IMG/VR virus record: IMGVR_UViG_3300033183_000491
Coordinates: 124,001-188,000 of that record
DNA: 64,000 nucleotides
Strand: one strand, 5' to 3'
Position 1 is the first letter of the stretch, and the number at the start of each line of letters is the position of its first letter. The notes beneath the pieces are model-generated. The model searched no databases. It was not told the DNA's origin and worked only from the letters and a program-made list of their open reading frames with translations. A program made the translations under genes and the position numbers. Shown here piece after piece: positions 45,945 to 64,000 of this stretch.

Positions 45945-45968
45945 TATCTTTCCTTTTCGATTTATTTA

Positions 45969-45975: not shown

Positions 45976-45992
45976 AAAGTAATTTTTCTTAA

Positions 45993-46268: not shown

Positions 46269-46287
46269 TTTTAATCCTTATAAAATA

Positions 46288-49200
46288 TTAAATTATTTCC
46301 CAAGAGTCTACACCATCGCTAATCAAATCTAAACTTTGTCCTGGTGTTTGTGAATCTGTCATAACAAAAGAAGCTAATCCTTCAATATTATCGCCACTAT
46401 AAGGTATGACGGTTAGAAGGTTTGTTCCAGCTTTGAATTTGATCCTTAGTTGCTGGCCAGCTACTGTACTACTTACTTGGGGTAATGTAATGTTAATAGC
46501 TGAATTTGTTGTATTTACGCTATAGTGGTAATTTATTTGTGCATTAAATGATGTTGTCTTTGCTGAATATGTATAATGCATATTCGTTAATTGTGAACCA
46601 TCGACAGCAGGAAGTTTAGCATTAGCATCTAATTGTACAATATTATTAGCAGCAGTTCCTACGTCTAAGGCAGCAGCAGTTCCTAATGTTGGTAAGTCTG
46701 TCCAGCTTAAGACTCCGTTTCCATCTGTTCTAAGAACTTGATTTAAGTTTCCGCTAGATGTAGGAAGTGTCAGAGTATAATTTGCTGCAGCAGAGTGTGC
46801 TGGTCCTTGAATAGCTACCCAGTGTGTATTTTGTTCACACTTAAATCTAATTAGACCACTACCTCTTGTTGAGTTACCTTGAAGTGTAACATACCCTGCA
46901 CCGTTTGGATCAAGGTTGATGTGATATCCTAAACTTGTTGTTCTAATATCATATCCCCCAAGATCTAGATGTCCTCCTAGTACAGGCGAAGAATCTTCTG
47001 ATAGTGATTCAATGCCTCCTGTAGAATCAGACCATACAACATGTCCATTTGCATTATCCCAAGTTAAAACTTGTCCATCAGTAGGTGTATCATGACCAAT
47101 CTGAGTAACTTGACCATCTTGATTTGCTTTTAAGAACGTGTTGTGTGTAAAGTTACCCCAGTTTGACCCTAGATATGCACCAAAAACTCCTTTTGTTGAA
47201 TTAAATTCAATATCAAAGTCTGTATTAAGATCTGTATCAGCACCTTTAACTTTTTCAATATGGAAGAATGGATAAGGACCAGATAAGTCAATTCTTCTAG
47301 ATGAATCTGTAAATATAAACTTTCTACTTGCAGATTGAAGTACTAAATTAGAGTCTGAATTGTTTCCATAAGAATCAGCGATCAGTGCTTGTTGTGTACC
47401 TAAAACAAGAGACTTAGCTTGCGCAGTAACTGCTGATTCACCTGTAATCAAGATTTCAGATCCAGGATAGCCTGTTCCTCCAGCTCCTTCTGATGTTAAA
47501 GTCGTAAGAGTTCTTAAATTCATTCCGTCTTTAAATCTAATTTGTCGAGTATAATCTCCATTACTTAAAGATGAACTTATGACAAGAGAATCTGCAACAC
47601 CATTTAGATTAAAATCAATGTCTGCACTTGCAGAAGCGTTTGTTATTTCTATATTACCTGTACTACCAAGAGTCAATGTTCCGTTAGATGTTTCAAAAGC
47701 AATATTTCCACTGCCTTGAGTAATATCATCAGCAGAAGTTGATGTAGCTAATCCACTAACAAAATTAGCTTTGGTCATTTTCTTAAGATTGTTATTATCT
47801 TCAGAATCTGCTAATAAAATAATGTCATTGTCGTTAATTGCAAGTTTTTCAGTTTGACCTGTTAATGCTAAAGATTCTAAACTAAGTGTACCTGTACTTG
47901 TAATAGAAGCATCGCCAGAAACTTTTCCAAAGTTATAAGCAGCAATACTAGATGCTTCTACTTGATAGTTTATTCCTGAAGCTTCGTTATCTACTATAAA
48001 TAGATCTGAGTCTGTAATAGAAGCTAAATTATTTCCTCCATCAATATCAATAGAACTTAAAGCGACTTTGTTAGCAACTGTGAGAGTATTAAGCTTAGAG
48101 TTAGCAATACTCCCTGCAAGCATTGCACTTGTAATTCCGCCGCTTTTAACTTTAATGTTGTCATTAACATCTATTTCGATAGAAGCGTTATCCACATTAG
48201 CATCAATAACATTGCCATTCTTTGTTAAGCCAGCACCAGCGTCAACTTGGCCAGCTGAAGAGAATTGATAAACTGAAACGTCATCTGTTCCAACTACAAA
48301 TGTTGATGGATCTGAGACAACTTGAACCCATCCTGTACCTTCATTTGTCGTACCACTAGCAACAAATACGTATGCACCAGGAATTTCGTTAGATTCGTCA
48401 CAATATCCACATCGTGTCAAAATCCAGTCAGTAGCAGCGTCACCTATTTGTGATACATAATATCGACCATTTTGAAATGCTGATGTTTGGTCTTTTAATA
48501 AGACGCCGTCATATTGTGCCCAAGTAGTTACACCATCAATGTCTAATGTAGCACTTGCTCCTAGATTAAGAGTTGCACCTACACCATCATCTGCAATTCC
48601 ATTATCATATGTTCCTACTAAGTTTTGTGTTGTTGCAGCAAGAACTGAAGGTTTTGCAATGATTCCTTGTGCTACTTCGTCAACGTAAGCTTTATTAGCA
48701 GCATCACCATTTTCAGTTGGATTTGCAAGATTTGTAATCTTATTAGAGTTAAGATTTAAATCAACACTTTGTCCTGTTAAATCAACCGATGCTATTTCTG
48801 TATTGGAAGAGATCACCAGATTACCTGAGTTAACACTTATTTCAACGTTTGATGTATTGTTTGAATCTAACGTCCCCTTATCAACACGATCAATCTGGAG
48901 ATATTTTGGAGCTGTGACTGCATATGGATTGACTCTTGTATTAATCTTAAGACTGTTCTTTGATGCCATTAAGATTTCGCCGTCTGTTTGTGTACCATCA
49001 CCTGCTACTAAATGTAATCCGTGTGCAGATTGAGTCACAACATCCATTCCAATGTTACCACCAGTTATAAATCTTGTATTACGAGTTCCTGCGTGTGATG
49101 ACTGATTATACGCGTCATTTGTAAAAATACCTGCATAACTCTGCACATTACCTTCAGGGTCAGCCTCACCTACATCGTTTGTATGCGCTGCACCTTTAAC

Positions 49201-49746
49201 TCTTAATGCAGTTGCATTATCTTTTTGACCAATAATAACACCACTTGCTGTTAAGTCTTGACCTATTTGGACGTGTGACGAAGAGTTACCAATTAAAATA
49301 TCACTACTACTACCTATTTCAGATGAAATCCTTAGTTCTCCTGAAGTGTTGTTTATTAAGGAGTTGGTTCCATCGTGAGTTATAACTAAATCACTATCAG
49401 AACCCCATTTTAATTGAAAAGTATCTGGAATAATTGACGAAGAATTTTGGTCAAATGTTAATACTTTTGAATTCTCTGCTTGTCCTAATACAGATAAATC
49501 ATTATAATTCAACTCTAAAGAAGATGCAGTTATTCCTAATGACAAGATCGAATTATCAGGATTCTTGTTTATCCAAAATCCTTGTGTAGAGTCGTATATT
49601 AAAAAATGATTATCTTGAATATTATTTATATTGACATTGTTTAGATTATTAATATTACCGAGTGATAACAATTCTTCTACTTCGATTACTTCTGATGACA
49701 GTAGACTTGGATTGTCAATGTCACTATTAATAAAAATCGTATTCAT
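46288..49746 (-). CDS. Mosaic fibre protein (1152 aa)
   Basis: DAANKAYVD, VLLKDQ..QNGRY module, AGAGLTKNGN, SPVLGGHLD, GQVLTWD, C-terminal domain ending DGVDSWEII as in the 733-aa fibre. Confidence 0.8.
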   Translation of the reverse strand: MNTIFINSDIDNPSLLSSEVIEVEELLSLGNINNLNNVNINNIQDNHFLIYDSTQGFWINKNPDNSILSLGITASSLELNYNDLSVLGQAENSKVLTFDQNSSSIIPDTFQLKWGSDSDLVITHDGTNSLINNTSGELRISSEIGSSSDILIGNSSSHVQIGQDLTASGVIIGQKDNATALRVKGAAHTNDVGEADPEGNVQSYAGIFTNDAYNQSSHAGTRNTRFITGGNIGMDVVTQSAHGLHLVAGDGTQTDGEILMASKNSLKINTRVNPYAVTAPKYLQIDRVDKGTLDSNNTSNVEISVNSGNLVISSNTEIASVDLTGQSVDLNLNSNKITNLANPTENGDAANKAYVDEVAQGIIAKPSVLAATTQNLVGTYDNGIADDGVGATLNLGASATLDIDGVTTWAQYDGVLLKDQTSAFQNGRYYVSQIGDAATDWILTRCGYCDESNEIPGAYVFVASGTTNEGTGWVQVVSDPSTFVVGTDDVSVYQFSSAGQVDAGAGLTKNGNVIDANVDNASIEIDVNDNIKVKSGGITSAMLAGSIANSKLNTLTVANKVALSSIDIDGGNNLASITDSDLFIVDNEASGINYQVEASSIAAYNFGKVSGDASITSTGTLSLESLALTGQTEKLAINDNDIILLADSEDNNNLKKMTKANFVSGLATSTSADDITQGSGNIAFETSNGTLTLGSTGNIEITNASASADIDFNLNGVADSLVISSSLSNGDYTRQIRFKDGMNLRTLTTLTSEGAGGTGYPGSEILITGESAVTAQAKSLVLGTQQALIADSYGNNSDSNLVLQSASRKFIFTDSSRRIDLSGPYPFFHIEKVKGADTDLNTDFDIEFNSTKGVFGAYLGSNWGNFTHNTFLKANQDGQVTQIGHDTPTDGQVLTWDNANGHVVWSDSTGGIESLSEDSSPVLGGHLDLGGYDIRTTSLGYHINLDPNGAGYVTLQGNSTRGSGLIRFKCEQNTHWVAIQGPAHSAAANYTLTLPTSSGNLNQVLRTDGNGVLSWTDLPTLGTAAALDVGTAANNIVQLDANAKLPAVDGSQLTNMHYTYSAKTTSFNAQINYHYSVNTTNSAINITLPQVSSTVAGQQLRIKFKAGTNLLTVIPYSGDNIEGLASFVMTDSQTPGQSLDLISDGVDSWEII

Positions 49747-49790
49747 TTAATTTACCTTTATATTTTAATATTTTTATCTTGTTATGCTAT

Positions 49791-52700
49791 TTATCTTGAC
49801 GAACCAATAAATTGCCAAACGTAAGCATCAACTTCATCGATTATGTCACCCGGTGCAGTAGTTGTCCAGTTATCATTACCATGAACTTTAGTTATGTTTC
49901 CAAAACTATTTCTTGTCAATTCGAAAGTCAGTAATAAAGAACTAGAAGCTCGTAGGGAAAGAGACGTGTTTTTATAAAAATTAAGTCTATCATATGATGC
50001 ATAGGCACCGTGGCTCAACTTTCCAATAAACGTACATTGAGGAAATGAATTTTCTTTTGTTATAGCTCCCGGATTACCGTATTTATTGTCATCTGGATGC
50101 GGATAGACTCCAAAAGGAACCCAAATAGAGCCGTTAAAATTTGGCCCTCTGTCAACTTTTATAGTTATACGTGATCCAAATCCATAAGACGTTCTAACGC
50201 TTTCAGCAGATGGTAAATATATTTTTCTAGTTATATTATCTACATTATAAAAATTACCTAAAATAGCTAATCTATAAAAATCAAAACCGCTTTTAATTGA
50301 CATATAATATTCCTCGATAGTCCTTGAAGAAGCTTCAAAAGAAACATTTGCGATTGAATTAGTATCTTCTAAATCTAGTTGGACTGTGAGATTATCGTCA
50401 TTTATATTATAAGAGTTTAAATCACCTCCAGACAAGCTAGAGACGCTAAGAGATCCTACTGAAGCTGATATGTGTTGCTTTATAGCTTCTGCTGTTGCTA
50501 AATTTGAGTGTTTATCTGGTATATCATCTGATAAGTTATCTAAGACATTGACTTCACTAACATTTTGTGGGTTTGTTAAAGTTCCTACGTATCCTAGAAC
50601 TTTATTAGGATTAACTTTTTCAAGTTTTGATTTTGTGACTGCATTCTCATTTATCTTGGATGTTATAATTGCATTGTCACTAATATTTACAGATTGAATT
50701 GTTCCTTTTATAAGGGATGTACCTGATGAGTCGAACTTTAATACTTTATTAGAATCTTCAGAAGAACCTGTTAACGCTGATGGGAGTGTTACATCTTCGA
50801 CTTCATCAATATAATTTTCAATTAACCAACAATATTTGTTATTATATTCTTCTATAAAAGTAATTACTACTTTTTTAATTCCTTCTCCAGAAAATTTAAT
50901 TGTTTTTTGATTCGTAAAACCAAATTCCAAGTAATTACTATTATTAGTTGCATCTGATCTTTGCCATATATCATTTTGAGAAGAATTAATAATTAATTTT
51001 TGTAAGGCAATATCTGTAAAGTAAAAAGTCTTTTTGTCGCCGTTTATAAATCCATTTTCATAAGCTTCCAGTGCAGATGGTATATTCACAGACCTTGTAG
51101 TAGTCGCTCCAGTATCTCCTAAAGTTACTGAGTTTTTTTGTCGCCAAAGTGAAATATTGCTAAACTCTATAGGAGCTTGTGTTCCAGTTAGTTCATAATA
51201 AGAGTTATCATGAAAATCTTTTTTATCTAAAATACTAGCAAACCACCTTGTCCCATCGTATAAAAATTCTTTCGGGGAATGAAAATCTGTTCCATTATAA
51301 TAGATAACTAAATCATTTCCTAAATCTACTTTTACATTTAATTTTAAACTTGAAAATCTTCCTCTATTATTATGACTCTCTTCATAATAAGAATTCGGTG
51401 AATCGGGATAAGACATTGATATTTTTACAATGTCACCTTCTGATATGTCATTGAAACTTGTTAAGTTAAAAGTAAATAAAGATCCATCACTAACATTATC
51501 TTTAATATGATAGTGTTTGTTAGCTTTATATATATCACCTGGGTTAACAGTCGGAGTGATTAAACCAGCATTTGTAACAGGAATATATTCTAAATCATTA
51601 GGGATGTTTAAGCCTGACTTAAATTCAGAAATTGTAACTTTTTTATGTGTAGTAGATTCACTATCTTTTAAAACAATTAAGTCGTTATCTGTTACACTAT
51701 CATTTATTGAAAGCGGATTAAAATTCTCAATATCAAAACTATTTGCTGATTTTATATCAGAAAATGCAACTTTTTTAAGTAATGTAGATGAATCATCATA
51801 TACCAAGAAAGTATCGTCATCAGATAAAGGGCCATCACTGTTTGGATCGTTTGGATCTGAGTTGTAAAGAGTTTGTTCACTTATTGATTTTGAAGTTAAC
51901 GAAGAAGATAATTTTTGTACGCCATTGTCATCAACTACGCTAAATCCAACTTGACCTATCGAATCAGTAATATCTGCTCTTATATAATTTTTTAATACAG
52001 ATGCAGTGGATTTTGTTGTTAAACCATTTGGTGAATTAGCGCTAACATCTCTTACAATAAATAAATCATCATCAGCAATTGAATTTAAAACTGTATCGAT
52101 ATCATCCGGGTTAATTGCATTTTCGTTCACTGAAGAAGCTATAATATCTCCTGATATTTTACTAACAGGAATATCGGGAAGTCTAGCTACGTCAATTGTA
52201 CCAGTAAGAAGAGTAGAATCTACATTTTTTATTTTTAGATAATTATTATCAGGATCAACTTCGATTGATGTACCATCTGTTTTAACATCAAATACATTAC
52301 CTGTTTTTGATAAAGCAGCCCCAGCTTCGGTTTGGCCTGCCGCAGAGAATTTTGCAAATAAGATATCGTCATTTCCAACTGTATCAGCTGTTTCAGGCGA
52401 AGTACATATAAACCCAGATTGAGCATAAGTGTCACCTTCTTCGACAAATACAAACTTGGCTGAGACTTCATCGTTTAATTCAAAATCACTAGACCTTACA
52501 GCAGCACCTGATGCTTGAACTATATAAATACCATTATCGCGAGGGTCATTTTGATCTCTAACTAAAATTCTATCACCTGTTGAAACATTAACACCATCAA
52601 TCAAATCATTATTTTCAAGTTGGTCTGCAAGATTTATATTTGTTGTAGTTGCAAGCCTTACAGGTTGTAATACCTCTCTAAGACCTTGTACAACAAGATC

Positions 52701-54161
52701 AACATATTGTTTGTTTGCAGCGTCAGCATCATTTTGCGGTTGCTCTACAAGCGTTAAAGAGTTTAAAGATGCATCACCATTTGATTGAATATAATTTGTT
52801 AAATCAGGTAAATCAGCTGCTGTGATAAAGTCTGTAATTTCATCGTCTGTAACATAGTTGTCTAAACTAGATGAAGTTAAGAATCCCTGGTCTGAAACCC
52901 AGCCTTGAGTTGCAAAATATGCTGTTCTAGTGTCAATCTCTGATTGTGTTGGATCGTTAAACTTATATGTAAAAGTGAGTGGAATATTGTTGTTTGTAAA
53001 GAAAGTATCGTCAACATTTTCTATTCTTAAACTTTTTCCTCCTTGTGTTTCAAGACTTAGTTTTGTGTCTCCATTTGTGTTAGATGTAACTACTAAAACA
53101 TTACCACTGTCAGTACTTTGCAATTTTAATTTTGCATTGTCTGCTGCAGAGTCAGATTTTGCAATCATTCTTAATTCATCTGCTGATGTTTTAATAGAGT
53201 GAGTACCAACTGAAAGATCTCCTCCTAGAACTGGTGCAGGATCATCTTCGACTGCTTCTAATCCACCACTTCCTAGTTTAACCCATTTCATATTTGAAGT
53301 AGCAGTTCTAGAACTTCCATCTGTATGTGGAACTGTAAAGAATATCTTTTGAGTATTACTATCACCTTTTAATACAGCAACTCTTACTCCAGAAAAGTCA
53401 CTCGTAGCAATTAAGTCATTTGCTCTAACTGCAGGACCTTCTGCTGCAGAAACGATGTAAATACCATTTTCAGAAGGTGTGGCCTGATCTTTGACTAGGA
53501 CTCTGTCACCTGTTGTTAGAATCTGTCCATCAATCTCAATCCCGTTTACAAGTGCCGTTGTTAAATCAATCGGTTCTGTTGTTGCAAACTTAACATCTTC
53601 TAATGACGTAGTTACATTTTCATAGACCAAGCTCTCATTGACTAAAGTACCAATTTGTAAATTTTTAGATGCATTATCAATTCTTAAGTTTGAACTACCA
53701 AGATTTAAACCATCGTTAAGGAGATAAAGATCACGAATTGGTAAACTAGAAAGACCAAGATCAAAATCGCTTACTCTAGGAACAAAGTGACCTTGATCAT
53801 TTATGTACCACTTTTCATCACCTGATATTGAAAAAGATATTTTGTTCTCTAATGGGTCTGATGTCTTAATCGCTTCAACACTTGTCTGAGCACCTTCTTC
53901 ACCTTCGAAAATTTTATCGACCTGAGATGATCCTGCTGAAGAAGAACTTATTTTATAATGAATTCCTGATCCATCTTCAAAATTTTCTATGGTAATATTA
54001 TCTCCAGAAACTAATAAAGGTGCACCAGATGTGTTATTCAGGGTATCAGTTTTCATTTCTTGGATTAATCCAAGAGTTGCATTAATTCCTGCCCATCTTC
54101 TTGTTGGAAGGCCTAATTTTCCTTCACTATCTTGTCTAGGTACTAAATTCTTAGTTGCCAT
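49791..54161 (-). CDS. Mosaic fibre protein (1456 aa)
   Basis: N-terminus NLVPR..GKLG...W as in the 733-aa fibre; two DR(V/I)LV(K/R)DQ..NGIY modules; three DxD.(F/L)(I/L)V.D...KK modules; SD AGGAG. Confidence 0.8.
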   Translation of the reverse strand: MATKNLVPRQDSEGKLGLPTRRWAGINATLGLIQEMKTDTLNNTSGAPLLVSGDNITIENFEDGSGIHYKISSSSAGSSQVDKIFEGEEGAQTSVEAIKTSDPLENKISFSISGDEKWYINDQGHFVPRVSDFDLGLSSLPIRDLYLLNDGLNLGSSNLRIDNASKNLQIGTLVNESLVYENVTTSLEDVKFATTEPIDLTTALVNGIEIDGQILTTGDRVLVKDQATPSENGIYIVSAAEGPAVRANDLIATSDFSGVRVAVLKGDSNTQKIFFTVPHTDGSSRTATSNMKWVKLGSGGLEAVEDDPAPVLGGDLSVGTHSIKTSADELRMIAKSDSAADNAKLKLQSTDSGNVLVVTSNTNGDTKLSLETQGGKSLRIENVDDTFFTNNNIPLTFTYKFNDPTQSEIDTRTAYFATQGWVSDQGFLTSSSLDNYVTDDEITDFITAADLPDLTNYIQSNGDASLNSLTLVEQPQNDADAANKQYVDLVVQGLREVLQPVRLATTTNINLADQLENNDLIDGVNVSTGDRILVRDQNDPRDNGIYIVQASGAAVRSSDFELNDEVSAKFVFVEEGDTYAQSGFICTSPETADTVGNDDILFAKFSAAGQTEAGAALSKTGNVFDVKTDGTSIEVDPDNNYLKIKNVDSTLLTGTIDVARLPDIPVSKISGDIIASSVNENAINPDDIDTVLNSIADDDLFIVRDVSANSPNGLTTKSTASVLKNYIRADITDSIGQVGFSVVDDNGVQKLSSSLTSKSISEQTLYNSDPNDPNSDGPLSDDDTFLVYDDSSTLLKKVAFSDIKSANSFDIENFNPLSINDSVTDNDLIVLKDSESTTHKKVTISEFKSGLNIPNDLEYIPVTNAGLITPTVNPGDIYKANKHYHIKDNVSDGSLFTFNLTSFNDISEGDIVKISMSYPDSPNSYYEESHNNRGRFSSLKLNVKVDLGNDLVIYYNGTDFHSPKEFLYDGTRWFASILDKKDFHDNSYYELTGTQAPIEFSNISLWRQKNSVTLGDTGATTTRSVNIPSALEAYENGFINGDKKTFYFTDIALQKLIINSSQNDIWQRSDATNNSNYLEFGFTNQKTIKFSGEGIKKVVITFIEEYNNKYCWLIENYIDEVEDVTLPSALTGSSEDSNKVLKFDSSGTSLIKGTIQSVNISDNAIITSKINENAVTKSKLEKVNPNKVLGYVGTLTNPQNVSEVNVLDNLSDDIPDKHSNLATAEAIKQHISASVGSLSVSSLSGGDLNSYNINDDNLTVQLDLEDTNSIANVSFEASSRTIEEYYMSIKSGFDFYRLAILGNFYNVDNITRKIYLPSAESVRTSYGFGSRITIKVDRGPNFNGSIWVPFGVYPHPDDNKYGNPGAITKENSFPQCTFIGKLSHGAYASYDRLNFYKNTSLSLRASSSLLLTFELTRNSFGNITKVHGNDNWTTTAPGDIIDEVDAYVWQFIGSSR

Positions 54162-54194
54162 ATTCTACAATCTCCTAGATATTTCTTTTAATAC

Positions 54195-54201
54195 TAATTA
54201 T
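54195..54201 (-). promoter_or_regulatory. Candidate late promoter ATAATTA flanked by a 7-bp inverted repeat (54188-54208)
   Basis: 33 nt upstream of the 1456-aa fibre gene ATG; arms TTAATAC/GTATTAA. Confidence 0.5.
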
Positions 54202-54243
54202 GTATTAATGTTTGTTTAACTTAGATAATATCAAATAAATTTT

Positions 54244-54825
54244 TTAACTGTTTAAATTGTATCCATTAGGTGCGAATGGATTATAAAAATAAAATCCTGT
54301 GCCGTCTCTTCCTGTAGTGCCTAAAGCTGCACTTTGAGACGATCCTGTAGGTCCGCTAAAGTCGATTCTAAATGCATCTCCTCCACCTCGGTCACCTACC
54401 ATTGCTTTAATAGGATAATAAACACCAGCACTTAAGCTAATCGATCCATCACCATTGATTTCACCGTGTGCTCCTCCTGCATCACAAAGAGCATTATTTT
54501 TATTTAGGTCCCACTCTAGGCTTTTTGCATCATCACCAATCCATAAGTATCCAGCATCGTCACATCTAATTCTAAATTCCCAAGTCCCTGTAACATCTGG
54601 TTTAAAAAGGCCGCAAACTACGTGTGTATCTAAGTCTGCTATAACAGACGATCTGTTGATCTGAGTTAAAGCTCCTTCACCTGACCAAGAAGAGTCCAGG
54701 TTTCCTTCTAACCTGCTTGGATCATCATTTGTCCCGGGATGATCACCTGAAGTGTCTGCATTTATGTATGCATCAAACTTTCTAATATAAAGTCCACTTT
54801 TAAGTTGTTTTCTAAATATAAACAT
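54244..54825 (-). CDS. Stand-alone PA14/GLEYA carbohydrate-binding domain protein
   Basis: GLFKPDVTGTWEFRIRCDDAGYLWIG...HG...ISLSAGVYYPI...GGG is the PA14 consensus; TAATG overlap with the upstream fibre gene. Confidence 0.85.
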   Translation of the reverse strand: MFIFRKQLKSGLYIRKFDAYINADTSGDHPGTNDDPSRLEGNLDSSWSGEGALTQINRSSVIADLDTHVVCGLFKPDVTGTWEFRIRCDDAGYLWIGDDAKSLEWDLNKNNALCDAGGAHGEINGDGSISLSAGVYYPIKAMVGDRGGGDAFRIDFSGPTGSSQSAALGTTGRDGTGFYFYNPFAPNGYNLNS

Positions 54826-57692
54826 TAGTTCCTCGTAAAGAATAAGTTAGCTCTTAACCCTTGCGCATTTGCAGGTGTAGCTGTTATAGCTAAAGTTAAT
54901 GCATCACCTGCGTCACAAGAAGAATTAGAAACAGTTGTTGTTGAGCCAGACGTTGTTGTTGTTCCTAAAGTTAAAGTAATCATAGACAAACTATCAGTTG
55001 TGTTTGTTAAAGTTACTGTTACATCACCAGAAGTTGTATGTTGGTCTAGATATAATTCTAATTTAGAAACTGTAAGACCAAACGGACAATTAAATCTGAA
55101 TGCATTCGTATCTGTTTGTAGATCAACCCCTGGAATACTCAATTCTGCAACAATAACTTCTTCGGGTTTGTCCCAAGTTAAAGAAGAACCATTATACATT
55201 AAAAAGTCATTTGTTGAAGGAGCTTCGACAGAAGTATCTAATTTGTTTAGTTCATCTGCAGTAGATGTTACTAATGTACTTCCAAGAGTTAAGCCTTCGT
55301 CCACGCCGTTATGACGAGGTATAATCGTTATACAACCGTCAGCAGTTCCATCAATTCTAAACCCTTCGTATCCACCACCATTTCCTCCACCTTGAACGTA
55401 TATATTGAGTCGGCCTTCTTCAGCACCAACTGTAGTGTCAATCATTTGAGTTCTAATCTTTGAAAACTCATGAATTCCGCCACCGGCATTTTCTCCATAA
55501 AACTCTATAGTCCCTGCATATCCTGCGCCAGTTGAATAATTTTGAATTCTTAAAGTAGGACCTAAAGAGTTTGTATCACCATTTTCAGTCGATATAGTAA
55601 ATCTAGGCTCAAAAGTCCCTGAGGCAGAAGATGGCATCGACATAGTTAATCCTTCATCAGGACTATGTCTAAGATAAACGTCGCTGTCATTTCCAAATTT
55701 AATATAAGAACCGTCTCCTAAGTATAAATATTTCCACTCAGCATTGACAGCACCTAAATTATACGTATTAACTGCTGAAGGTAGTAGATGTCCTGTGATT
55801 CCAAACCCATTAGGATCTAAGTTGCCACCTAATTGAGGTGTTGTATCATCAACTAAGTCTGAGCTACCTGAAGAAGCTGTTGCAAAAGTTAGCTGGCCAC
55901 TTCCATTTGTTTGTAAAACTTGTCCAGAAGTTCCATCGGACGTTGGAAATGAATATGCATTATTAAATGTAATAATACCAGTTTCATCAATTTTGAGTCT
56001 GTTAGAAGTTGTACCGCCTGTTCCTGTATTAAATTCTAACGTACCACCATAAGTTGAACCGCTTACTGTTGCACTTGATTTAATTACTGCACTTTCTAGA
56101 AAAGACGTTCCATTGTGGCCATACATTACAAATTTACCAAGCTCGTCTGCAGCAGAAACTGCAGTTGGTGTCGAAACTGTTCCCCTTGCTTTTTGTAATA
56201 AAACATCAGGACCATCTGCAGATGTATGATACTGGTCTATTCTCATTGAACCTTCATATTGTACGTCTCCCACTAAGTGTAATGTTCTTGCGGGAGAACT
56301 AGTTCCAATACCTATACGATCATTTGTTGTATCTATCGTTAATAAATCTGTAGACAATACACTAGAACCATCACTATTAGCAACCAATATAGCATTATTA
56401 GTTAAAGTAGAAGGCATTGAGTAACCATCACCAACCAAAAAAGTTCCTGATAAGTCTGGTAAAGTTAAAGTTCTGTTTGATGAAAGAGAGCTTTGGCCTT
56501 GAATTTGTATGTAGTTTGTTCCGTGTTTTTCGCCTGTTCCATCTTCATATATTCTTAAGGGATTATCATAATGAAAACCAACAGAGTTAACGTCAATCCA
56601 CATACGTGCATTTTCTGGGTGTGCTCCAGTTCCACCAGATGCATCTGATGCACCTTTGTCTGGGAGTTCGAGATAAAAACCAACTCTTCTATTTGCAGCA
56701 CCTGCTTGATCATCAATTGCCCCAAACCATTGTTCATACCATAATTGGCCTTGTCCGTATTGTCTTGTGTTAGAAGAGTACCAATTTGCAAACTTTACCT
56801 TTACAGTATCTTCATTGTAAGCAAAAAATTGCGACCCTGATCCTCCGAGAGATAGCCTATTAGATACTGTGATATTCTGTGATGTCAATAAACCATTACT
56901 ATCAGCACCTCCAGTATTGTTCCAAGTTAGATTTGAACTTAAAGACACGCTAGAACTGTCACTATTAGATGTCAAGACAGCGTTATTAGTAAGTGTTGAA
57001 GGCAATTGATAGCTACTCTGTGTAGACTGATTCGATGCATTACCAATAAAGAATTTACCTTCATTTAAGTTAGGTGTAGCATTTGTTCTTCCCGCACCTC
57101 CAACCAAAACCTCACCATTATTCACATGAGCTTTTACAATTTTACCAATGTTTTGAATTAAGTTAGATCCTGTTGGTGCTGATGTTTGGAATCCTCCTGC
57201 AGTTGTAGAGCTTACATAAAGTGTGTCACCCTCACTATTCGCACCGTCTGTATCGATACCTTTAAATAAACCGCTGTAAACAACATATCCTTCAGCTTCA
57301 GCTGCAATATCGTTTTGAACAAAACCAAAAGCAGGCATTGTTGCAGAAGAATTTGACTGCGCTAAAGAAACTTCTGGTTTATTACCACTATGTCCTGATA
57401 TGTAAACTAATTGTCCTTTAGTTAAAGCAGTTGTAGTAGAAGGGTTTTTTACCGGGAATGATAACGCTTTTGGCAAAGAGTCACCTTGTAAAAGAGCAAT
57501 ATCTCCATCTTCGTCAGGAAAGTTAATTGTTCTATCATCAGTAGGATCAGTAACTGTTAATTGTAATTCAAAATCGTTACTAGTTTCTCCTTCAAATGCT
57601 AGCCCACCTGAACCAATAACTATTCTATCAGTTGGTTTTAAGACCTTTTTTGATCCATTTTCATAATATACAAACTTATCAATATCTGCCAT
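54825..57692 (-). CDS. Mosaic fibre protein (955 aa)
   Basis: TDPTDDRTINFPD, beta-clip-like GQLVYIS...PAFG...GDTLYVS...IQNIG, RIGIGTSSP, FPTSDGTSGQVL, TPQLGGNLD, WKYLYLGDG, ELNKLD. Confidence 0.8.
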   Translation of the reverse strand: MADIDKFVYYENGSKKVLKPTDRIVIGSGGLAFEGETSNDFELQLTVTDPTDDRTINFPDEDGDIALLQGDSLPKALSFPVKNPSTTTALTKGQLVYISGHSGNKPEVSLAQSNSSATMPAFGFVQNDIAAEAEGYVVYSGLFKGIDTDGANSEGDTLYVSSTTAGGFQTSAPTGSNLIQNIGKIVKAHVNNGEVLVGGAGRTNATPNLNEGKFFIGNASNQSTQSSYQLPSTLTNNAVLTSNSDSSSVSLSSNLTWNNTGGADSNGLLTSQNITVSNRLSLGGSGSQFFAYNEDTVKVKFANWYSSNTRQYGQGQLWYEQWFGAIDDQAGAANRRVGFYLELPDKGASDASGGTGAHPENARMWIDVNSVGFHYDNPLRIYEDGTGEKHGTNYIQIQGQSSLSSNRTLTLPDLSGTFLVGDGYSMPSTLTNNAILVANSDGSSVLSTDLLTIDTTNDRIGIGTSSPARTLHLVGDVQYEGSMRIDQYHTSADGPDVLLQKARGTVSTPTAVSAADELGKFVMYGHNGTSFLESAVIKSSATVSGSTYGGTLEFNTGTGGTTSNRLKIDETGIITFNNAYSFPTSDGTSGQVLQTNGSGQLTFATASSGSSDLVDDTTPQLGGNLDPNGFGITGHLLPSAVNTYNLGAVNAEWKYLYLGDGSYIKFGNDSDVYLRHSPDEGLTMSMPSSASGTFEPRFTISTENGDTNSLGPTLRIQNYSTGAGYAGTIEFYGENAGGGIHEFSKIRTQMIDTTVGAEEGRLNIYVQGGGNGGGYEGFRIDGTADGCITIIPRHNGVDEGLTLGSTLVTSTADELNKLDTSVEAPSTNDFLMYNGSSLTWDKPEEVIVAELSIPGVDLQTDTNAFRFNCPFGLTVSKLELYLDQHTTSGDVTVTLTNTTDSLSMITLTLGTTTTSGSTTTVSNSSCDAGDALTLAITATPANAQGLRANLFFTRN

Positions 57693-58801: not shown

Positions 58802-60130
58802 TTAAAGTTTTGCTGCAACTATATTTGCAAGATCTGATCTATATCCCTTAGTGAAATTAATATGACCTGTTAAAGATTCTTCTTTTAATTTTTCAACTGT
58901 AAGAGTTAATCCATTCGATAATTTATTAATATAAGGTAAATCAACTTGTTCTATATCACCTAACAAAATTATTTTTGAATTTTTGCCTGTTCTAGTAATT
59001 ACAGTTTTTAATTCATGGACAGTTGCATTTTGAGCTTCGTCAACAATCATTACAGAGTCATTAAAACTTCTTCCTCTGATATGTGATAAAGGTGCTACGT
59101 CAATCTGACCTTTTTCCATCATCATTTCGAAATAAGAAAGATCTCCAAATTGATTTCTAAAGTTATCTACAATTGGTGATAACCAAGGAGACATCTTTTC
59201 ATTTAAGTCTCCGGGCAAGAAGCCAATATCTTTCCCTACTGTCTGAATAGGTCTTGTAAATATGATTCTTTTCTTTGAACCTTTTTCTATAAACTTTAAT
59301 GCAGTCATTAAAGCTAAGTATGTCTTACCACTACCAGGAACGCCTGTTAGAGAAACTAAAGGTATATTTTCATCTAATAAAAGACTTAAAGCAAATATTT
59401 GTTCTTTATTTTTAGGTTCAATACCAGAATTTTTATATAACTCTTTTTTTCCGTCCAAAACAATCAAACGATCATCTTTTCTTATTAGAAGACATGATTG
59501 ATTACTTCCGTTGTTAGATTTAAGAATTAAAAATTCATTTTCAGAAATGTCTATATTATAGTTTTCTTCAACAAGGTCTTCTTTTATCTTCAAATGATTA
59601 CCAGAATAGGCTCTGTTTATAACATCTGGGTCAACTAATAGTTCAACATACCCTTGGAATAAATTGTCTTTCTGCACAAATTCGTAATCTGCATAATAAT
59701 CATCTGCTTCTATTCCTACAGAATCACATTTTACTCTTAGATTAATGTCTTTAGTAATTAAAACAACTTTATTACTTAAATTTTTAAAATAGTTTGCATT
59801 AGAAATTATTTTATTATCATTTTGGTTTTGATCTAATCCTTGTAAACCTGACCAATCACATTCAGCATTTACTGTTATTGATATATCTTTATCTTCAACA
59901 TATATTCCTGAATGTAGGCTTCCTAATTTTCTTAAATCGTCTAGATATCTATTAAAAAATCTAGCATGTTCTCCTAAAATACCCTCTCTTGTTTTAAATT
60001 TATCTAGTTCTTCTAAAACAACTAAAGGTATTACTATATCATTTCCTTTCATATTAAACAAAGAAAATTTGTCATAAAGTAAAACGCTAGTGTCAACAAT
60101 AAAAGTTTTTCTAATATGTTTTTTACTCAT
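58802..60130 (-). CDS. phoH: PIN-PhoH protein (PhoH2/YlaK type)
   Basis: PIN motifs VDTSVLL, LEELD, DNKII, ITKDINLR; PhoH motifs GVPGSGKT, RGRSF, IVDEAQN, LLGDIEQVD. Confidence 0.93.
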   Translation of the reverse strand: MSKKHIRKTFIVDTSVLLYDKFSLFNMKGNDIVIPLVVLEELDKFKTREGILGEHARFFNRYLDDLRKLGSLHSGIYVEDKDISITVNAECDWSGLQGLDQNQNDNKIISNANYFKNLSNKVVLITKDINLRVKCDSVGIEADDYYADYEFVQKDNLFQGYVELLVDPDVINRAYSGNHLKIKEDLVEENYNIDISENEFLILKSNNGSNQSCLLIRKDDRLIVLDGKKELYKNSGIEPKNKEQIFALSLLLDENIPLVSLTGVPGSGKTYLALMTALKFIEKGSKKRIIFTRPIQTVGKDIGFLPGDLNEKMSPWLSPIVDNFRNQFGDLSYFEMMMEKGQIDVAPLSHIRGRSFNDSVMIVDEAQNATVHELKTVITRTGKNSKIILLGDIEQVDLPYINKLSNGLTLTVEKLKEESLTGHINFTKGYRSDLANIVAAKL

Positions 60131-60202: not shown

Positions 60203-60466
60203 ATGAGTAATAATACAGATAGTTTAAATAATGTAACATGCTATAATGCACATAAACTAAAAAACAAAAGCTGTAAAAATAAAAAATGCAGATACTGGCA
60301 TGATCTAAACGATGATGACAATAACTGCATTTTAAACAAGGTAAATTCTGATAAGGATTTTACTTTGCAAGAAATAGGCGATTTATTTGGTATTACTAGA
60401 ATGAGAGTATGTCAAATCGAGAAAGGAATTCTCGATAAAATTAAAAAGAACTTAACTCTTGCCTAG
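60203..60466 (+). CDS. Stand-alone sigma-70 region 4 HTH protein with a Cys/His-rich N-terminus
   Basis: FTLQEIGDLFGITRMRVCQIEK matches sigma70 region 4.2 (TLEEVG..F.VTRERIRQIE); CxxxH..CxxxxCxxWH..C in the N-terminus. Confidence 0.85.
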   Translation: MSNNTDSLNNVTCYNAHKLKNKSCKNKKCRYWHDLNDDDNNCILNKVNSDKDFTLQEIGDLFGITRMRVCQIEKGILDKIKKNLTLA

Positions 60467-60676
60467 AGTAAATTTAACAAAATCTCCAGTGAATCCTTTT
60501 AGGTGTCGGAGGCTTTTTCTAAGTCTAACTCCTGCAGCTTTGTTTCCTTTATTAGCTTTCAAAGAATCTGATTCAATACTTTCTACTAAAAGTTTTAGAT
60601 GATCAAAGTGATCACTAATAGACTCAAGAGTAATTTCTTCTGTTGTAACTTCATTTTCTGTAGTCTCTGTTGACAT
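60452..60676 (-). CDS. Histone H1-like (Hc1 family) small DNA-binding protein
   Basis: KGNKAAGVRLRKSL matches the recalled KGNKAAGTRARK motif of short Hc1-family proteins; SD AAGGAG. Confidence 0.7.
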   Translation of the reverse strand: MSTETTENEVTTEEITLESISDHFDHLKLLVESIESDSLKANKGNKAAGVRLRKSLRHLKGFTGDFVKFTLGKS

Positions 60677-60685
60677 GTTTTCTCC

Positions 60686-60907
60686 TTAAATAATTAGATT
60701 TTCTTTTTTAATTTCAACGTTTTCTTCAGTAGGTCTTACTATCTTGTGGATAGATCTCATCATTTCTGTGTTTTCTAACTCATATGATAGTATCTCAATA
60801 ATTTTAATAATTTCTTTATCATTAACACCAAAATTAACAATTTCAGATGTAATATTTCTACATTTTTCGATTGATTTAATATCTTCAATTTTACTTGCAT
60901 CTAACAT
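60686..60907 (-). CDS. Hypothetical protein (73 aa)
   Basis: TAATG overlap with the upstream gene at 60907; operon context. Confidence 0.65.
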   Translation of the reverse strand: MLDASKIEDIKSIEKCRNITSEIVNFGVNDKEIIKIIEILSYELENTEMMRSIHKIVRPTEENVEIKKENLII

Positions 60908-61374
60908 TACAAATACCTTTGTGTAACTTCTTTTTTAAGTTTAAATTTTCCATCATTAAATTCTATGAGATTAATTACTATATTATTATCAATTTCATTT
61001 TTGTTTAATACTAAAATGCCACTTTCACCACTTTCGATCAAATATTCTGTTAATTCCCAGTCTGAAATGTGGCATTGATTTTTTTCTAAAAGACTAACTA
61101 AAGTATCTAAGTTATTAGACAATAAATTAAATTTTATATCTTCTTTTGTGTTTATAAGAGATACTAAACTCTCGTTTCCCCATTTAATTTCACTTTTACA
61201 AACTTCGGTAACAAAGTGAATAATGTTACAATTTTCACACATAACATATTTTTCTTCAACATTGTTATCATTCATTTTAGAAAAAACTGGGAATTTGTGA
61301 TAAACTGGTTTTGTTTTATTTTTAAATAAAGAAAGTGTACATTGACACTCTATAAGATGTTTTATGTAATTCAT
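60907..61374 (-). CDS. Hypothetical Cys/His-containing (putative Zn-binding) protein
   Basis: KHLIECQC and CENCNIIH..TEVC; ATGA-type overlap with the chaperonin-like gene. Confidence 0.7.
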   Translation of the reverse strand: MNYIKHLIECQCTLSLFKNKTKPVYHKFPVFSKMNDNNVEEKYVMCENCNIIHFVTEVCKSEIKWGNESLVSLINTKEDIKFNLLSNNLDTLVSLLEKNQCHISDWELTEYLIESGESGILVLNKNEIDNNIVINLIEFNDGKFKLKKEVTQRYL

Positions 61375-62576
61375 AAATTTTCTCTTTTATTTTGTATGAC
61401 AATATAACCAATAGAATCTAAAGTATTTTTTAATTTATTTCCTAATATTTTAGTAGACTCTATACATTTTTTAGAATATAAATTTTCTTTGTACTCTTTA
61501 AGACCATAGATAGCTAAATTGTTATAGCAGACGATTAAATATTTGATCTCTGTTAACATTTCTATGTTAGACCTAGGAATTAATATTTCAACTATGTTTG
61601 TGTTAATCCTAGACTTTCTCTTGAACAAATATTCTTTTAAGTCAGAATCATTACAATTATTGATTTTTTTATTTATTTCTTCGTTTAATTCTTTGTTTGG
61701 ATTAAATATTTCAATAGAATCTTGCTTAATCTTTAATAAACCTGAAGATGATTTTTTAACTGAGTCTTTATAAATTCCGTCACCTGACTCTGCATTAATC
61801 ATACTACAACCTAAAACTTTTGACAAGTCTTCTAGTTTAAAAGGATCTTCGTTTTCAAATTTTACAATATATGGTAAAACATATATGTTATTTCTTAAAA
61901 TAATACTTTTAATTGCATTTGAAGCGTTATCTGACAAACCCCTGCAAAAAACTATCAAAGATAAATTGTTATCTTTTGCTTTATCCATTAAAGGAATCAA
62001 TTCAGATTCTCTTTCAATATATGCATCCATTACAGATATTAAAAAAGTTTGAGTTTTAGTTTTATTTTTACTAAAATATATTGAACTAAAATCCTTATGT
62101 ATAGAAATGTCAAACACTGGATTTTTATTTTTTTTAACTGTAATATTGTTATTATCTGAAGGATTGCAGATCAATGTTGCATTTGGTCCAGAAAATTCTA
62201 AAACATTTTTAAGTAACTCAAAACTTCTTTTTGATGTAGTTTGAGAAAAATATTTGTAAACATTTTCTAAATTTTTTTCTACATCTTTAAAACCTTGAAA
62301 TATATTTTCTTTCTTTAAGAACAAACCAACAATATAATTTGAAAGATAATACGATCCTCCAGGATATAATCTTTCTGATTTGATAAAATAGTTTAGTAAA
62401 ATATCACAATATGGAAGATTTTTAAAATCTTTATTTGAAGAAATATATCTAAAGTAGCTGAATTTTGATTTATGAATTCTATTACTAGAAAGAATCCTCA
62501 ACTTGTCATTAGAAAATTTATTATTTAAATTGTTAAGAAAAACAATAGTTTTTATCAAATTTTTATTTTCAATCAT
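61371..62576 (-). CDS. Degenerate GroEL/Cpn60-like protein: apical domain retained, ATP-binding motif absent
   Basis: ISVMDAYIERESELIPLMDKAKDNNLSLIVFCRGLSDNA...KLEDLSKVLGC aligns by eye with GroEL [39 protein letters not shown]...MLQDIATLTGG; no GDGTT motif; only 401 aa. Confidence 0.7.
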   Translation of the reverse strand: MIENKNLIKTIVFLNNLNNKFSNDKLRILSSNRIHKSKFSYFRYISSNKDFKNLPYCDILLNYFIKSERLYPGGSYYLSNYIVGLFLKKENIFQGFKDVEKNLENVYKYFSQTTSKRSFELLKNVLEFSGPNATLICNPSDNNNITVKKNKNPVFDISIHKDFSSIYFSKNKTKTQTFLISVMDAYIERESELIPLMDKAKDNNLSLIVFCRGLSDNASNAIKSIILRNNIYVLPYIVKFENEDPFKLEDLSKVLGCSMINAESGDGIYKDSVKKSSSGLLKIKQDSIEIFNPNKELNEEINKKINNCNDSDLKEYLFKRKSRINTNIVEILIPRSNIEMLTEIKYLIVCYNNLAIYGLKEYKENLYSKKCIESTKILGNKLKNTLDSIGYIVIQNKRENL

Positions 62577-62582
62577 AGAAAT

Positions 62583-62596
62583 ATTATAATATTATA
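62583..62596 (-). promoter_or_regulatory. Tandem TATAAT hexamers; the proximal one lies 6 nt before the ATG (leaderless-type geometry)
   Basis: Coding strand reads TATAAT-AT-TATAAT-ATTTCT-ATG with no SD. Confidence 0.45.
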
Positions 62597-63070
62597 TTAT
62601 TTGATGTTTAATAAAGCCCAATCTAAAACTTCACTTAAATAATCAGGTAACTTATTTTTTATAGTCAAAGAATTAGATTCCCAAATAAATCCTTTATGTT
62701 CTTTAAATAAAGTTTTTTCATTCGGCAATATTTTAATATTTTTATTTAAATCAGGAATTCCTTGAATATCTTCAACATCTAGGATGTATTCTCCTATATA
62801 CATAACTAATCCATCACTGAATGTTTTATTTATATTATCTAGACAAACGTAATTTTTATTTATCTTTAATGAAGATTCTTCTTCAGTCTCTCTTATCGCA
62901 CATGAGTATGAGTCTTCATAAGGATCAATTGCTCCTTTTGGAAAATCATACATATCATTATTGTCGATTAACAATAAAAACAATATATCGTTAGGTTTAT
63001 CTAAAATAATATTTTTTCTATTATCAAAATAAATTACAAAACCTGCTCCAGTAATCTCTTTGTTTAACAT
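62597..63070 (-). CDS. Nudix hydrolase (Ap4A hydrolase-like)
   Basis: Nudix box FPKGAIDPYEDSYSCAIRETEEES; downstream EHKGFIW. Confidence 0.9.
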   Translation of the reverse strand: MLNKEITGAGFVIYFDNRKNIILDKPNDILFLLLIDNNDMYDFPKGAIDPYEDSYSCAIRETEEESSLKINKNYVCLDNINKTFSDGLVMYIGEYILDVEDIQGIPDLNKNIKILPNEKTLFKEHKGFIWESNSLTIKNKLPDYLSEVLDWALLNIK

Positions 63071-63077
63071 AATTTTC

Positions 63078-64000
63078 TCACGCTATTATATAACTTTCAA
63101 TAAAATTCTTTGGGAGATAGTGTTTATTTTTAGAATAAACTCTTTCCCAGTCTTTATCAAGTATATATGTTATTGCTTCGTCATCTTCAGATCTTATACT
63201 TCTACCGACACTTTGAATAACAGTCCTTATAGTCTGAAGGTCATACCACCATTTCCATTTTTTGATTTTTTTGCCAACAACTTTATCGCCTAAATATGGA
63301 AATGGTATCTTGCATAATATTTGAAATTTTGATAAATCGCCTTTTAAATTAACGCCTTCAGCCATAGAAGGTGATAATAATATAGTAGGTTCTTTTGAGT
63401 TAATATGCCTTTCTAATATTTTATCTCTATTTTCACCAAAAGCAATTAAAATCCTTCTAGACTTTATTTTTTTCTTAAGAAACTCTGCGATTTTTATATT
63501 GTGAGTATGAATTATACCTTTATCTTTAGGGTGATTTTTTATTATTTCTTTTATCATAGAAACCATTACAGGTAAAGTTTTATCAATGTTTTTCATAGAC
63601 ATACTTCCTGATGGTGAATATATTATTGGACTTTTGTTCGGTTCAAAAGGAGATTCTTCTCTAACGAAAACTGTCTTTTCAGTAGGAAGCCCTAACGTTA
63701 GTGAGAAACCTTCGTGAGACAAAATAGTAGCTGACATGAAGATTACATAGTCTGCATATTTCATCAAATAGTCATGAGCATATTCAGCAACTTCAATAGG
63801 TTTAAAAATAAATTTTCTATAACTTCCGTTACTATTGTCTATATCAAAAACCCAATTATCTTTATCATATAAATTAATAAAGTTTAATATTTTTTTCTCG
63901 TGTGAAACGAGCATATCATATCTTTTTGTTATTTTTGTAAACTCTTCTAATTTTTGAGTAGACAATCCAAATTTTTCCATTTGAGAAGATATAAACTTAA
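63078..64000 (-). CDS. DinG/YoaA/XPD-family SF2 helicase, C-terminal part (5' end lies outside the window)
   Basis: IFMSATI, KGIIHT, EGVNLKGD..KFQILCKIPFP, motif VI QSVGRSIRSEDD; the frame stays open from ATG 63980 to the window edge. Confidence 0.88.
   Translation of the reverse strand, partial: KFISSQMEKFGLSTQKLEEFTKITKRYDMLVSHEKKILNFINLYDKDNWVFDIDNSNGSYRKFIFKPIEVAEYAHDYLMKYADYVIFMSATILSHEGFSLTLGLPTEKTVFVREESPFEPNKSPIIYSPSGSMSMKNIDKTLPVMVSMIKEIIKNHPKDKGIIHTHNIKIAEFLKKKIKSRRILIAFGENRDKILERHINSKEPTILLSPSMAEGVNLKGDLSKFQILCKIPFPYLGDKVVGKKIKKWKWWYDLQTIRTVIQSVGRSIRSEDDEAITYILDKDWERVYSKNKHYLPKNFIESYIIA

Follow-up and report, generated by a model that had tools for sequence, protein, structure and literature searches.

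Chaperonins are among the best-understood molecular machines, and their phage versions have been studied as minimal variants that dispense with a co-chaperonin. Eukaryotes possess degenerate chaperonin paralogs or domains without a normal ATPase, among them BBS6/MKKS, BBS10, BBS12 and the CCT-like domain of PIKfyve, that help in assembly or act as binding modules next to a true chaperonin. Among jumbo phages, EL gp146, OBP gp246 and AR9 gp228 are chaperonins that work without a co-chaperonin (PMC7185714, PMC9598537), and a 'GroEL-only' clade has been described (PMC5649160). The viral chaperonin survey of Marine et al. (2017) covered full-length sequences only, those missing key regions having been discarded (PMC5649160). 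In chlamydiae, the divergent paralogs GroEL2 and GroEL3 stand beside canonical GroEL and differ from it in the ATP-binding/hydrolysis and GroES-binding regions (PMC1892554). Here we describe a chaperonin-like protein of 401 amino acids (aa) encoded in a 64,000-nucleotide (nt) stretch of viral DNA, hereafter the window, which corresponds to positions 124001-188000 of IMG/VR record IMGVR_UViG_3300033183_000491. We conclude with high confidence that this protein is an ATPase-dead chaperonin paralog maintained under selection. The gene and the segments of its product, in window coordinates, are as follows.

61371..62576, minus strand: short chaperonin-like gene, ATG start, 401 aa, ATPase-dead GroEL/Cpn60 paralog
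62277..62576, minus strand: aa 1-100, remnant of the N-terminal equatorial half, with helices A-C, a stem-loop hairpin at aa 28-35 and a shortened helix D
62346..62375, minus strand: aa 68-77, ERLYPGGSYY, in the place of GDGTTT, a degenerate phosphate loop with E68 and P72 invariant and G73 nearly so, placed by profile-profile alignment and column counts
62127..62276, minus strand: aa 101-150, first intermediate-domain segment (GroEL ~141-190), placed by hhalign (target 110 = GroEL 150) and HMMER against GroELs of the PDB
61599..62126, minus strand: aa 151-326, complete apical domain (GroEL 190-374)
61506..61598, minus strand: aa 327-357, second intermediate-domain segment (GroEL ~375-409, helix M), placed by hhalign and column counts
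61374..61505, minus strand: aa 358-401, what is left of the C-terminal equatorial half, namely a short hairpin plus a single long helix, placed by the structure model, VIA-align and hhalign

Taken singly, the protein gave no match in scans of Pfam (E <= 1), PHROGs or PADLOC, permissive thresholds included. Its sole match in NCBIfam was the GroEL3 model (E 4.2e-5), which at 22.4 bits is below the threshold of 600 bits (NCBIfam cut-offs are 350-600), and a phmmer search of all PDB sequences returned one entry, a GroEL, at E 0.035 over target residues 161-309, in the apical domain. A profile built from 38 close homologs matched GroEL/Cpn60 chains only in the PDB (best E 1.6e-5, profile 83-331 = GroEL 124-379), and hhalign of this close family against a Cpn60 alignment gave E 4e-5 for target 113-345 = GroEL 153-393. 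No hhalign signal appeared in the equatorial segments with the close family alone; it was obtained with a wider family profile of 167 sequences (effective sequence number, Neff, 7.1), which aligned with Cpn60 at a probability of 99.5% and E 3.4e-23 over 354 columns, target 31-392 corresponding to Escherichia coli GroEL 46-461. The family profile also matched canonical phage GroELs at E 1e-24 to 1e-37. Thus the preliminary description, which had aligned residues of about 120-300 with the GroEL intermediate and apical domains by eye, was right as far as it went, and the similarity reaches further on both sides.

Structural searches gave the same answer. A model of the protein (mean predicted local distance difference test score, pLDDT, 87) was submitted to Foldseek; all top matches were GroEL (E 3e-17, probability 1.00), and 456 matches were found at E <= 0.001, so that the chaperonin fold sought in such searches was indeed recovered. 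The modelled elements include equivalents of helices A-C, the stem-loop hairpin, a shortened helix D, helix M, a short hairpin and one long C-terminal helix. Two residues, D250 and R320, which correspond to GroEL D291 and R368, are invariant in the short family and in GroEL alike. As modelled, the protein is therefore an entire chaperonin subunit with all three domains, the equatorial one reduced, and not an apical fragment.

The nucleotide-binding site was compared column by column. In the wide-family hhalign alignment, KSERLY-PGGS--YYLS lies opposite KANDAAGDGTTTATVLA, with P72 at the position of the Mg-binding D87 and the loop two residues shorter; this is the same placement of ERLYPGGSYY at the GDGTTT position as had been made by eye. 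Proline occupies this position in all 38 close homologs and in 147 of the 167 wide-family sequences. Further replacements affect D52 (S37; Ser, Thr or Asn across the family), the catalytic D398 (Y346; Ser, Asn, Tyr or Cys) and the G414-G415-G416 triplet (Y362-K363-E364, variable across the family), and the GroEL segments that hold N479/A480 and I493/D495 have no counterpart in the short protein. A GDGTTT-like motif was absent from every one of the 191 family sequences scanned. Since D52, D87, D398 and the GGG triplet are replaced family-wide and the C-terminal nucleotide contacts are deleted, ATP binding and hydrolysis in the manner of GroEL would be impossible; judging from the alignments, the nucleotide pocket as it exists in GroEL is gone, and the loss of ATPase suggested at the outset extends to the whole family. 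The site has a motif of its own, E68-x3-P72-G73, conserved in the wide family at 95%, 88% and 83%, respectively, a pattern that shows constraint at the old phosphate-loop site of another kind than GroEL's.

The protein had been estimated to be about 140 aa shorter than GroEL; the difference is 147 aa from the E. coli protein (548 aa) and 142 aa from the phage's own Cpn60 (543 aa, see below). Residues are missing from two regions. Approximately 30-40 aa around GroEL helices D and E are absent, as seen in the secondary structure of the model, in the hhalign gaps (target 92/93 against GroEL ~108-127) and in an analysis of alignment offsets within the family. In the C-terminal equatorial half, ~90-100 aa are absent, including the inter-ring contact helices and the N479, A480 and D495 nucleotide contacts; the C-terminus of the model superposes on GroEL 519-527 (VIA-align). 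The equatorial domain is thus incomplete, with the inter-ring contact regions (K105/A109 of helix D, and 434-464) reduced or missing. Comparison of length classes indicates how far each part of the family has gone. Members of 450-480 aa correspond nearly one-to-one with GroEL through the N-terminal equatorial half (offset ~8 residues) and lack the C-terminal equatorial part only, whereas in the ~400-aa subgroup, to which the present protein belongs, and in a ~385-aa subgroup another 30-50 residues are gone from the vicinity of helices D and E. The ATP motif is missing at every length class. The family offers a stepwise evolutionary series of equatorial reduction, from ~460 to ~400 to ~385 aa.

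The preliminary description had presented the protein as one that keeps the substrate-binding apical domain. This domain is indeed complete; the implied restriction to it does not hold, as the intermediate and a reduced equatorial domain are also kept, and the binding face is altered. The helix-H positions L234 and L237 stay hydrophobic (I194 and M197). In helix I, the V263 position is taken by K223, a lysine in 38/38 close and 110/167 wide-family sequences, and the V264 position is polar in the close family. D184, E188, E192, R212 and G213 are near-invariant and specific to the family. An aromatic cluster, F163/Y167/F168, lies in the segment matching GroEL Y199/Y203/F204; its residue-by-residue equivalence varies between two alignments, and we do not rely on it. 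Altogether, residue conservation indicates that the apical binding face is remodelled rather than merely retained, and we infer a shift from promiscuous hydrophobic capture to a specific partner.

The short gene belongs to a large family. A word-indexed search yielded 44 close homologs of 394-409 aa and 37-99% identity, all metagenomic and none with a Pfam domain. An exhaustive hidden Markov model (HMM) search of 1.84 billion cluster representatives returned 723, 294 and 32 clusters (50% identity) at E <= 1e-3, 1e-10 and 1e-30, respectively; those at E <= 1e-10 were viral or metagenomic throughout and unannotated, and among the 150 matches listed lengths did not exceed 481 aa. Neighbours in the ESM Atlas were clusters of 'hypothetical protein' that were 100% viral. 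Distant members give matches to the NCBIfam GroEL models and, with E as low as 1.5e-21, to phrog_5725, the general GroEL family of phages, but none to Pfam. When the present protein and two distant members were searched by tblastn against 50,697 phage records, no short-family member was found, and canonical GroELs alone were retrieved, through the distant member P0151.

Several observations indicate that these genes are functional. Open reading frames (ORFs) of 369-463 aa are intact in 79 loci, about ten metagenome studies of marine, seawater and estuary samples contain near-identical DNA, and invariant family-specific residues persist across sequences that are just 10-20% identical. The ratio of nonsynonymous to synonymous substitution rates (dN/dS, or omega; Nei-Gojobori method) was taken from unsaturated pairs only, since at saturation (dS > 1) the omega of 0.3-0.5 seen in deep pairs cannot be interpreted. 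It amounted to 0.105 (dS 0.04), 0.046 (dS 0.51) and 0.065-0.074 (81% aa identity), values equal to those of the neighbouring orf155 and PhoH genes in the same pairs. With omega at 0.05-0.10 among homologs, a comparison proposed in the preliminary description, the gene is not evolving neutrally as a pseudogene would. It is functional and under strong purifying selection, and it is conserved in a lineage of marine jumbo phages that is large, deep and uncultured. Invisible to Pfam and PHROGs, the family was also filtered out of earlier virome chaperonin surveys; a family model would therefore re-annotate many marine jumbo-phage 'hypothetical proteins'.

How this protein relates to the described systems can now be specified. 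With GroEL/Cpn60 (PF00118; phage copy phrog_5725) it shares the three-domain fold over the whole chain, profile homology and the D291 = D250 and R368 = R320 pairs; it differs in being ~145 aa shorter, with the nucleotide pocket destroyed, the inter-ring helices deleted and an invariant Lys at the V263 position. It falls under the Pfam, PHROG and NCBIfam thresholds, and its homology emerges only in profile-profile comparison. The short protein is thus homologous to GroEL but lacks the features that define the function (ATP site, full equatorial domain, curated thresholds), and we do not file it as a functional chaperonin. The phage proteins EL gp146, OBP gp246 and AR9 gp228 are full-length and ATP-dependent, whereas the short protein has neither the ATP site nor a complete equatorial domain, a third of which is missing. 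The description of the gp146 type (~545-558 aa, with an ATP cycle) fits the full-length gene of the same genome and not the 401-aa protein. Minichaperones made from GroEL (191-345/376; PDB 1KID, 1FYA, 1LA1, 3VZ6) are engineered single-domain fragments; the present protein is natural and selected, has an intermediate domain and an equatorial remnant in addition, and carries changed groove residues. Its apical part is confined to aa ~151-326 of 401, and the match of the whole chain to the three-domain fold sets it apart from an apical minichaperone. The chlamydial GroEL2 and GroEL3 (NF038370/NF038369) resemble it as degenerate paralogs that co-exist with a canonical GroEL (here in 6/6 near-complete genomes). 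They are, however, full-length bacterial proteins with models of 506-533 positions, whereas the short protein is viral and shortened and is not a member (22.4 bits against 600). The BBS proteins and the PIKfyve domain derive from eukaryotic group-II chaperonins and have no specific sequence relationship to the short family. A comparative jumbo-phage study makes no mention of such a short chaperonin protein, and no description of the family was found in the searchable literature.

The preliminary description had suggested searching the rest of the genome for an intact groEL or groES. The whole record is a jumbo-phage genome of 239,550 bp with direct terminal repeats, estimated to be 100% complete. 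Searching it with a Cpn60 model revealed one full-length gene, at G000:C1:27040-28542, whose 543-aa product belongs to phrog_5725 (E 2.6e-131), retains all ATP-site motifs and the canonical apical residues, and has as its best cultured relative a Flavobacterium phage GroEL (40% identity). No match to Cpn10/GroES (PF00166, E <= 1) was found in this genome or in five relatives, these six being the genomes of at least 74% completeness. Related contigs with the short gene comprise 21 close and 54 distant loci (contigs of 160-340 kb included). The distribution of full-length Cpn60 against completeness was as follows.

G000 (this genome), completeness 100%: full-length Cpn60 present
G001, completeness 84%: full-length Cpn60 present
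G007, completeness 84%: full-length Cpn60 present
G008, completeness 99%: full-length Cpn60 present
G010, completeness 100%: full-length Cpn60 present
G012, completeness 74%: full-length Cpn60 present
G013, completeness 60%: full-length Cpn60 present
Remaining records, completeness <= 61%: full-length Cpn60 none found

The two genes therefore occur together in 6/6 genomes of at least 74% completeness, and the seven co-resident Cpn60s are all motif-complete and without a Gly-Met tail. Across the same samples, relatives of the full-length Cpn60 show 74-94% identity versus 38-66% for the short paralog. Their recovery from many of the same samples indicates that both genes span the clade; the short paralog evolves about three times faster at the amino-acid level. 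In four cultured phages that encode GroEL a second, short copy is absent, and the family profile matches their canonical GroEL alone. An unrooted maximum-likelihood tree gathered the short family in one clan, with 100% support in the Shimodaira-Hasegawa-like approximate likelihood ratio test (SH-aLRT), on a branch of 3.0 substitutions per site and with deviant composition. This clan attached on the side of the co-resident Cpn60s, and the split from bacterial and cultured-phage GroELs received 98% SH-aLRT. The arrangement suggests, and given the tree's exposure to long-branch and compositional artefacts only suggests, an old duplication within the phage lineage.

Two side observations concern the full-length gene and the expression of the short one. 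Just upstream of the full-length Cpn60 is a small ORF.

L001:3075-3293, minus strand: 72-aa ORF, conserved in G001

It sits where GroES lies in Flavobacterium phage immuto, and neither Pfam nor PHROGs gave any Cpn10 similarity for it. As to the short gene, no Shine-Dalgarno-like sequence precedes its start (62577-62596), the leader being purely A/T; G+C content around the gene is 23-26%, and the window is AT-rich. A look-up of RNA sequencing runs for the gene listed none. The absent Shine-Dalgarno sequence and the Flavobacterium-phage affinity of Cpn60 are compatible with a host that does without Shine-Dalgarno initiation (e.g. Bacteroidota).

An intact phage Cpn60 without a GroES makes the idea of a partner to the phage chaperonin concrete. 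We tentatively propose that the short protein binds clients independently of ATP, as a holdase or adaptor that partners the chaperonin system of the phage itself. A pared-down equatorial domain, devoid of nucleotide pocket and inter-ring helices, carries complete apical and intermediate domains, in what might be called a 'pseudo-chaperonin'. Its remodelled apical face, with the helix-H hydrophobics kept but an invariant Lys at the V263 position and a conserved acidic/basic cluster, would capture a specific phage client, and the protein would then work beside the ATP-driven full-length Cpn60 or pass the client to it. Taken as a whole, mechanism included, this proposal falls a little short of probable. 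Of the three roles put forward earlier (holdase or adaptor, inactive subunit of a mixed ring, modulator of host GroEL), the common premises of chaperonin ancestry and a functional gene stand, and no one role is singled out by the data.

The stem-loop hairpin and the C-terminal segment are conserved in the family, and their retention in the model makes ring-type self-association plausible. A two-copy complex prediction of the protein returned 'no answer' (score 0.00 against a mark of 0.42), which counts neither way on this point. In a stronger version of the proposal, which we consider unlikely, the short protein would be an obligate, non-catalytic part of a two-gene viral chaperonin system, either joining the Cpn60 rings or forming a ring of its own that docks as a lid or client-delivery adaptor and replaces the co-chaperonin. 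If this were true, the two-gene system would have an architecture for which no precedent is known among the chaperonins of cells or cultured phages. Whatever the mechanism, the hundreds of 50%-identity clusters of naturally shortened, ATPase-dead GroEL paralogs show that viruses have evolved a 'pseudo-chaperonin' conceptually like pseudo-enzymes and the BBS proteins. The family is a natural experiment in what the apical and intermediate domains can do without ATP, and may help to explain how phage chaperonins without GroES recruit or release their clients.

The genes around the short chaperonin gene are listed below.

60907..61374, minus strand: orf155, conserved Cys/His protein, co-oriented homologs of which lie downstream of the short gene in 79 loci
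60686..60907, minus strand: orf73, small helical protein, TAATG junction with the orf155 stop, weak profile matches only
62597..63070, minus strand: NUDIX hydrolase gene directly upstream of the short gene (Pfam PF00293 E 5.9e-6, PHROG nudix), syntenic in close relatives
63078..63998, minus strand: DinG/Rad3-type helicase, C-terminal part, running off the window (Pfam Helicase_C_2 E 1.8e-19, phrog_2488 E 2.2e-70)
60452..60676, minus strand: Hc1 histone-H1-like gene (Pfam PF07432 E 4.3e-11), found downstream of the triad of short gene, orf155 and orf73 in most related loci
60203-60466, plus strand: stand-alone sigma-70 region-4 protein, 87 aa, with a Cys-rich N-terminus
58802..60130, minus strand: PIN-PhoH (PhoH2-type) fusion gene (Pfam PhoH E 1.2e-53, PIN_4 E 1e-27)
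43743-57692, minus strand: four very large genes (733, 1152, 1456 and 955 aa), with a G+C fraction of 0.35-0.37 against 0.23-0.26 in the rest of the window

In 21/21 close loci the order is helicase, NUDIX, short chaperonin, orf155, orf73, Hc1, sigma region 4 (opposite strand) and PIN-PhoH. The 54 distant loci differ in having the helicase downstream of the triad, yet orf155 and orf73 still follow the short gene on the same strand. Synteny counts were made on 79 loci in which the three genes of the triad are all complete. In 79/79 the short gene, orf155 and orf73 succeed one another in this order on one strand; the orf155-orf73 gap is -8 to +11 nt in 77/79. Between the short gene and orf155, 21 loci have a gap of <= 8 nt, 31 loci one of 207-341 nt and 27 loci one of 0.7-2.5 kb. 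In the window the stop of the short gene overlaps the start of orf155 in an ATGA junction (61371-61374), read directly from the sequence. Thus orf155 and orf73 are an obligate pair, whose link to the short gene is universal in order and strand, while translational coupling is clade-specific. The two small downstream genes had been described as coupled; this is correct for their coupling to each other, and extends to the short gene only in the clade of the window.

Seven residues of orf155 are invariant (H6, C10, C12, H26, C46, C49 and H53), and its AlphaFold2 model (pLDDT 92.5) had no fold match in the PDB. For the product of orf73, NCBIfam returned archaeal RNA polymerase subunit F, though weakly and below the threshold (E 6.5e-4). 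Together with the adjacent Hc1 and sigma region-4 genes, orf73 hints at a transcription- or chromatin-related cluster.

These data bear on the proposal of a client-binding partner to Cpn60, and several points weigh against it. The roughly threefold faster evolution of the short protein would be unusual for a tightly docked partner, and the two genes are 80-160 kb apart, in separate operons. Their co-residence could be mere shared ancestry of one phage lineage, the genomes being phylogenetically non-independent. Conservation of E68-x3-P72-G73 shows that some function is left at the old phosphate-loop site, where a cryptic ligand may bind. The immediate neighbours (helicase, NUDIX, Hc1, sigma region 4 and PIN-PhoH) are nucleic-acid-related and not morphogenetic, and no chaperone signature was found in the always-linked orf155-orf73 by PDB fold and NCBIfam searches.

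A tie to Cpn60 would not be needed if the protein were a stand-alone assembly chaperone, acting as a monomer or in its own small ring as an ATP-independent holdase for virion proteins. Candidate clients would be the large fibre- or decoration-like products encoded downstream, since PIN-PhoH is followed by four virion-type proteins (733-1456 aa) and a baseplate wedge gene. We deem this rather improbable. An intact Cpn60 is co-resident in 6/6 near-complete genomes, the unrelated Hc1, sigma region-4 and PIN-PhoH genes separate the short gene from the fibre genes, and the generic hydrophobic groove is partly swapped for charged invariant residues.

The syntenic data invite a different interpretation, in which the short protein forms a non-folding complex with the orf155 and orf73 products, the chaperonin scaffold being re-used as a protein-protein or nucleic-acid-related module with a transcription- or chromatin-type function. 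The triad keeps its order on one strand in 79/79 loci although the helicase switches sides, the ATGA overlap joins the first two genes in the window, the neighbours include Hc1, a stand-alone sigma region 4 and PIN-PhoH, orf73 weakly matches RNA polymerase subunit F, and the charged conserved residues are specific to the family. Direct coupling to orf155 is, however, a feature of the window's clade only, with gaps of 0.2-2.5 kb and inserted genes elsewhere. Moreover, orf155 has no recognisable fold or family, hence no tie to transcription, and the orf73 match to RNA polymerase subunit F is far under cut-off. We therefore consider such a complex improbable.

Incorporation as an inactive subunit into a mixed ring with the full-length phage Cpn60, where it would tune allostery or the cavity, would account for the strict co-residence of the two genes, for the retention and conservation of two elements that make up the intra-ring beta-sheet of GroEL, the stem-loop hairpin and the C-terminal segment, and for the position of the short family on the Cpn60 side of the tree (98% SH-aLRT). 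Such a role is quite improbable for a protein that misses ~140 equatorial residues, whose close family has equatorial segments without detectable sequence similarity, and which evolves much faster than its supposed ring partner.

Failure to find GroES in the phage lineage's own genomes could instead direct attention to the host, whose GroES might be sequestered or whose GroEL rings might be poisoned by the short protein, redirecting folding capacity to the phage. In the short protein, the counterpart of the GroEL segment for GroES and substrate binding does include F163/Y167/F168 and the helix-H hydrophobics. But the exact equivalence of the aromatic cluster depends on the alignment chosen, and helix I, needed for binding of the GroES mobile loop, carries the invariant Lys at V263 and polar residues at V264, so that a decoy or modulator of the host chaperonin is very improbable. 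Finally, a decaying pseudogene or chance ORF, which the lack of Pfam and PHROG matches and the rapid amino-acid divergence might suggest, is refuted by the intact ORFs of 369-463 aa in 79 loci, an omega of 0.05-0.10, residues that remain invariant at 10-20% identity, the confident model (pLDDT 87) and the recurrence of near-identical sequence in about ten studies. The proposal of an ATP-independent partner to the phage Cpn60 is thus retained as a tentative one.

Some minor features of the region were also recorded. The first three of the four large genes share repeated head-decoration or tail-fibre-like modules (phrog_2647, phrog_30390 and phrog_27782). PIN-PhoH is strongly conserved in the lineage (64-86% identity) and is a useful marker gene for this group of phages. 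In a distant relative (L031:1003-5466), a DUF444 - SpoVR - PrkA trio and a peroxiredoxin are found just upstream of the short chaperonin gene, and an RNaseH-like gene and a peptide deformylase lie between this gene and orf155. The sigma region-4 gene of the window is convergent with the Hc1 gene, their 3' ends overlapping by 15 nt, a placement conserved in related phages. Beside the full-length Cpn60 is a gene for a 249-aa sigma factor (L001:423-1172, minus strand) whose regions 1.2, 2 and 3 are accompanied by no more than a marginal region 4; an 84-aa ORF (L001:179-433, minus strand) follows and overlaps this gene. This factor and the separate region-4 protein of the window may represent split or modular sigma factors in this phage.

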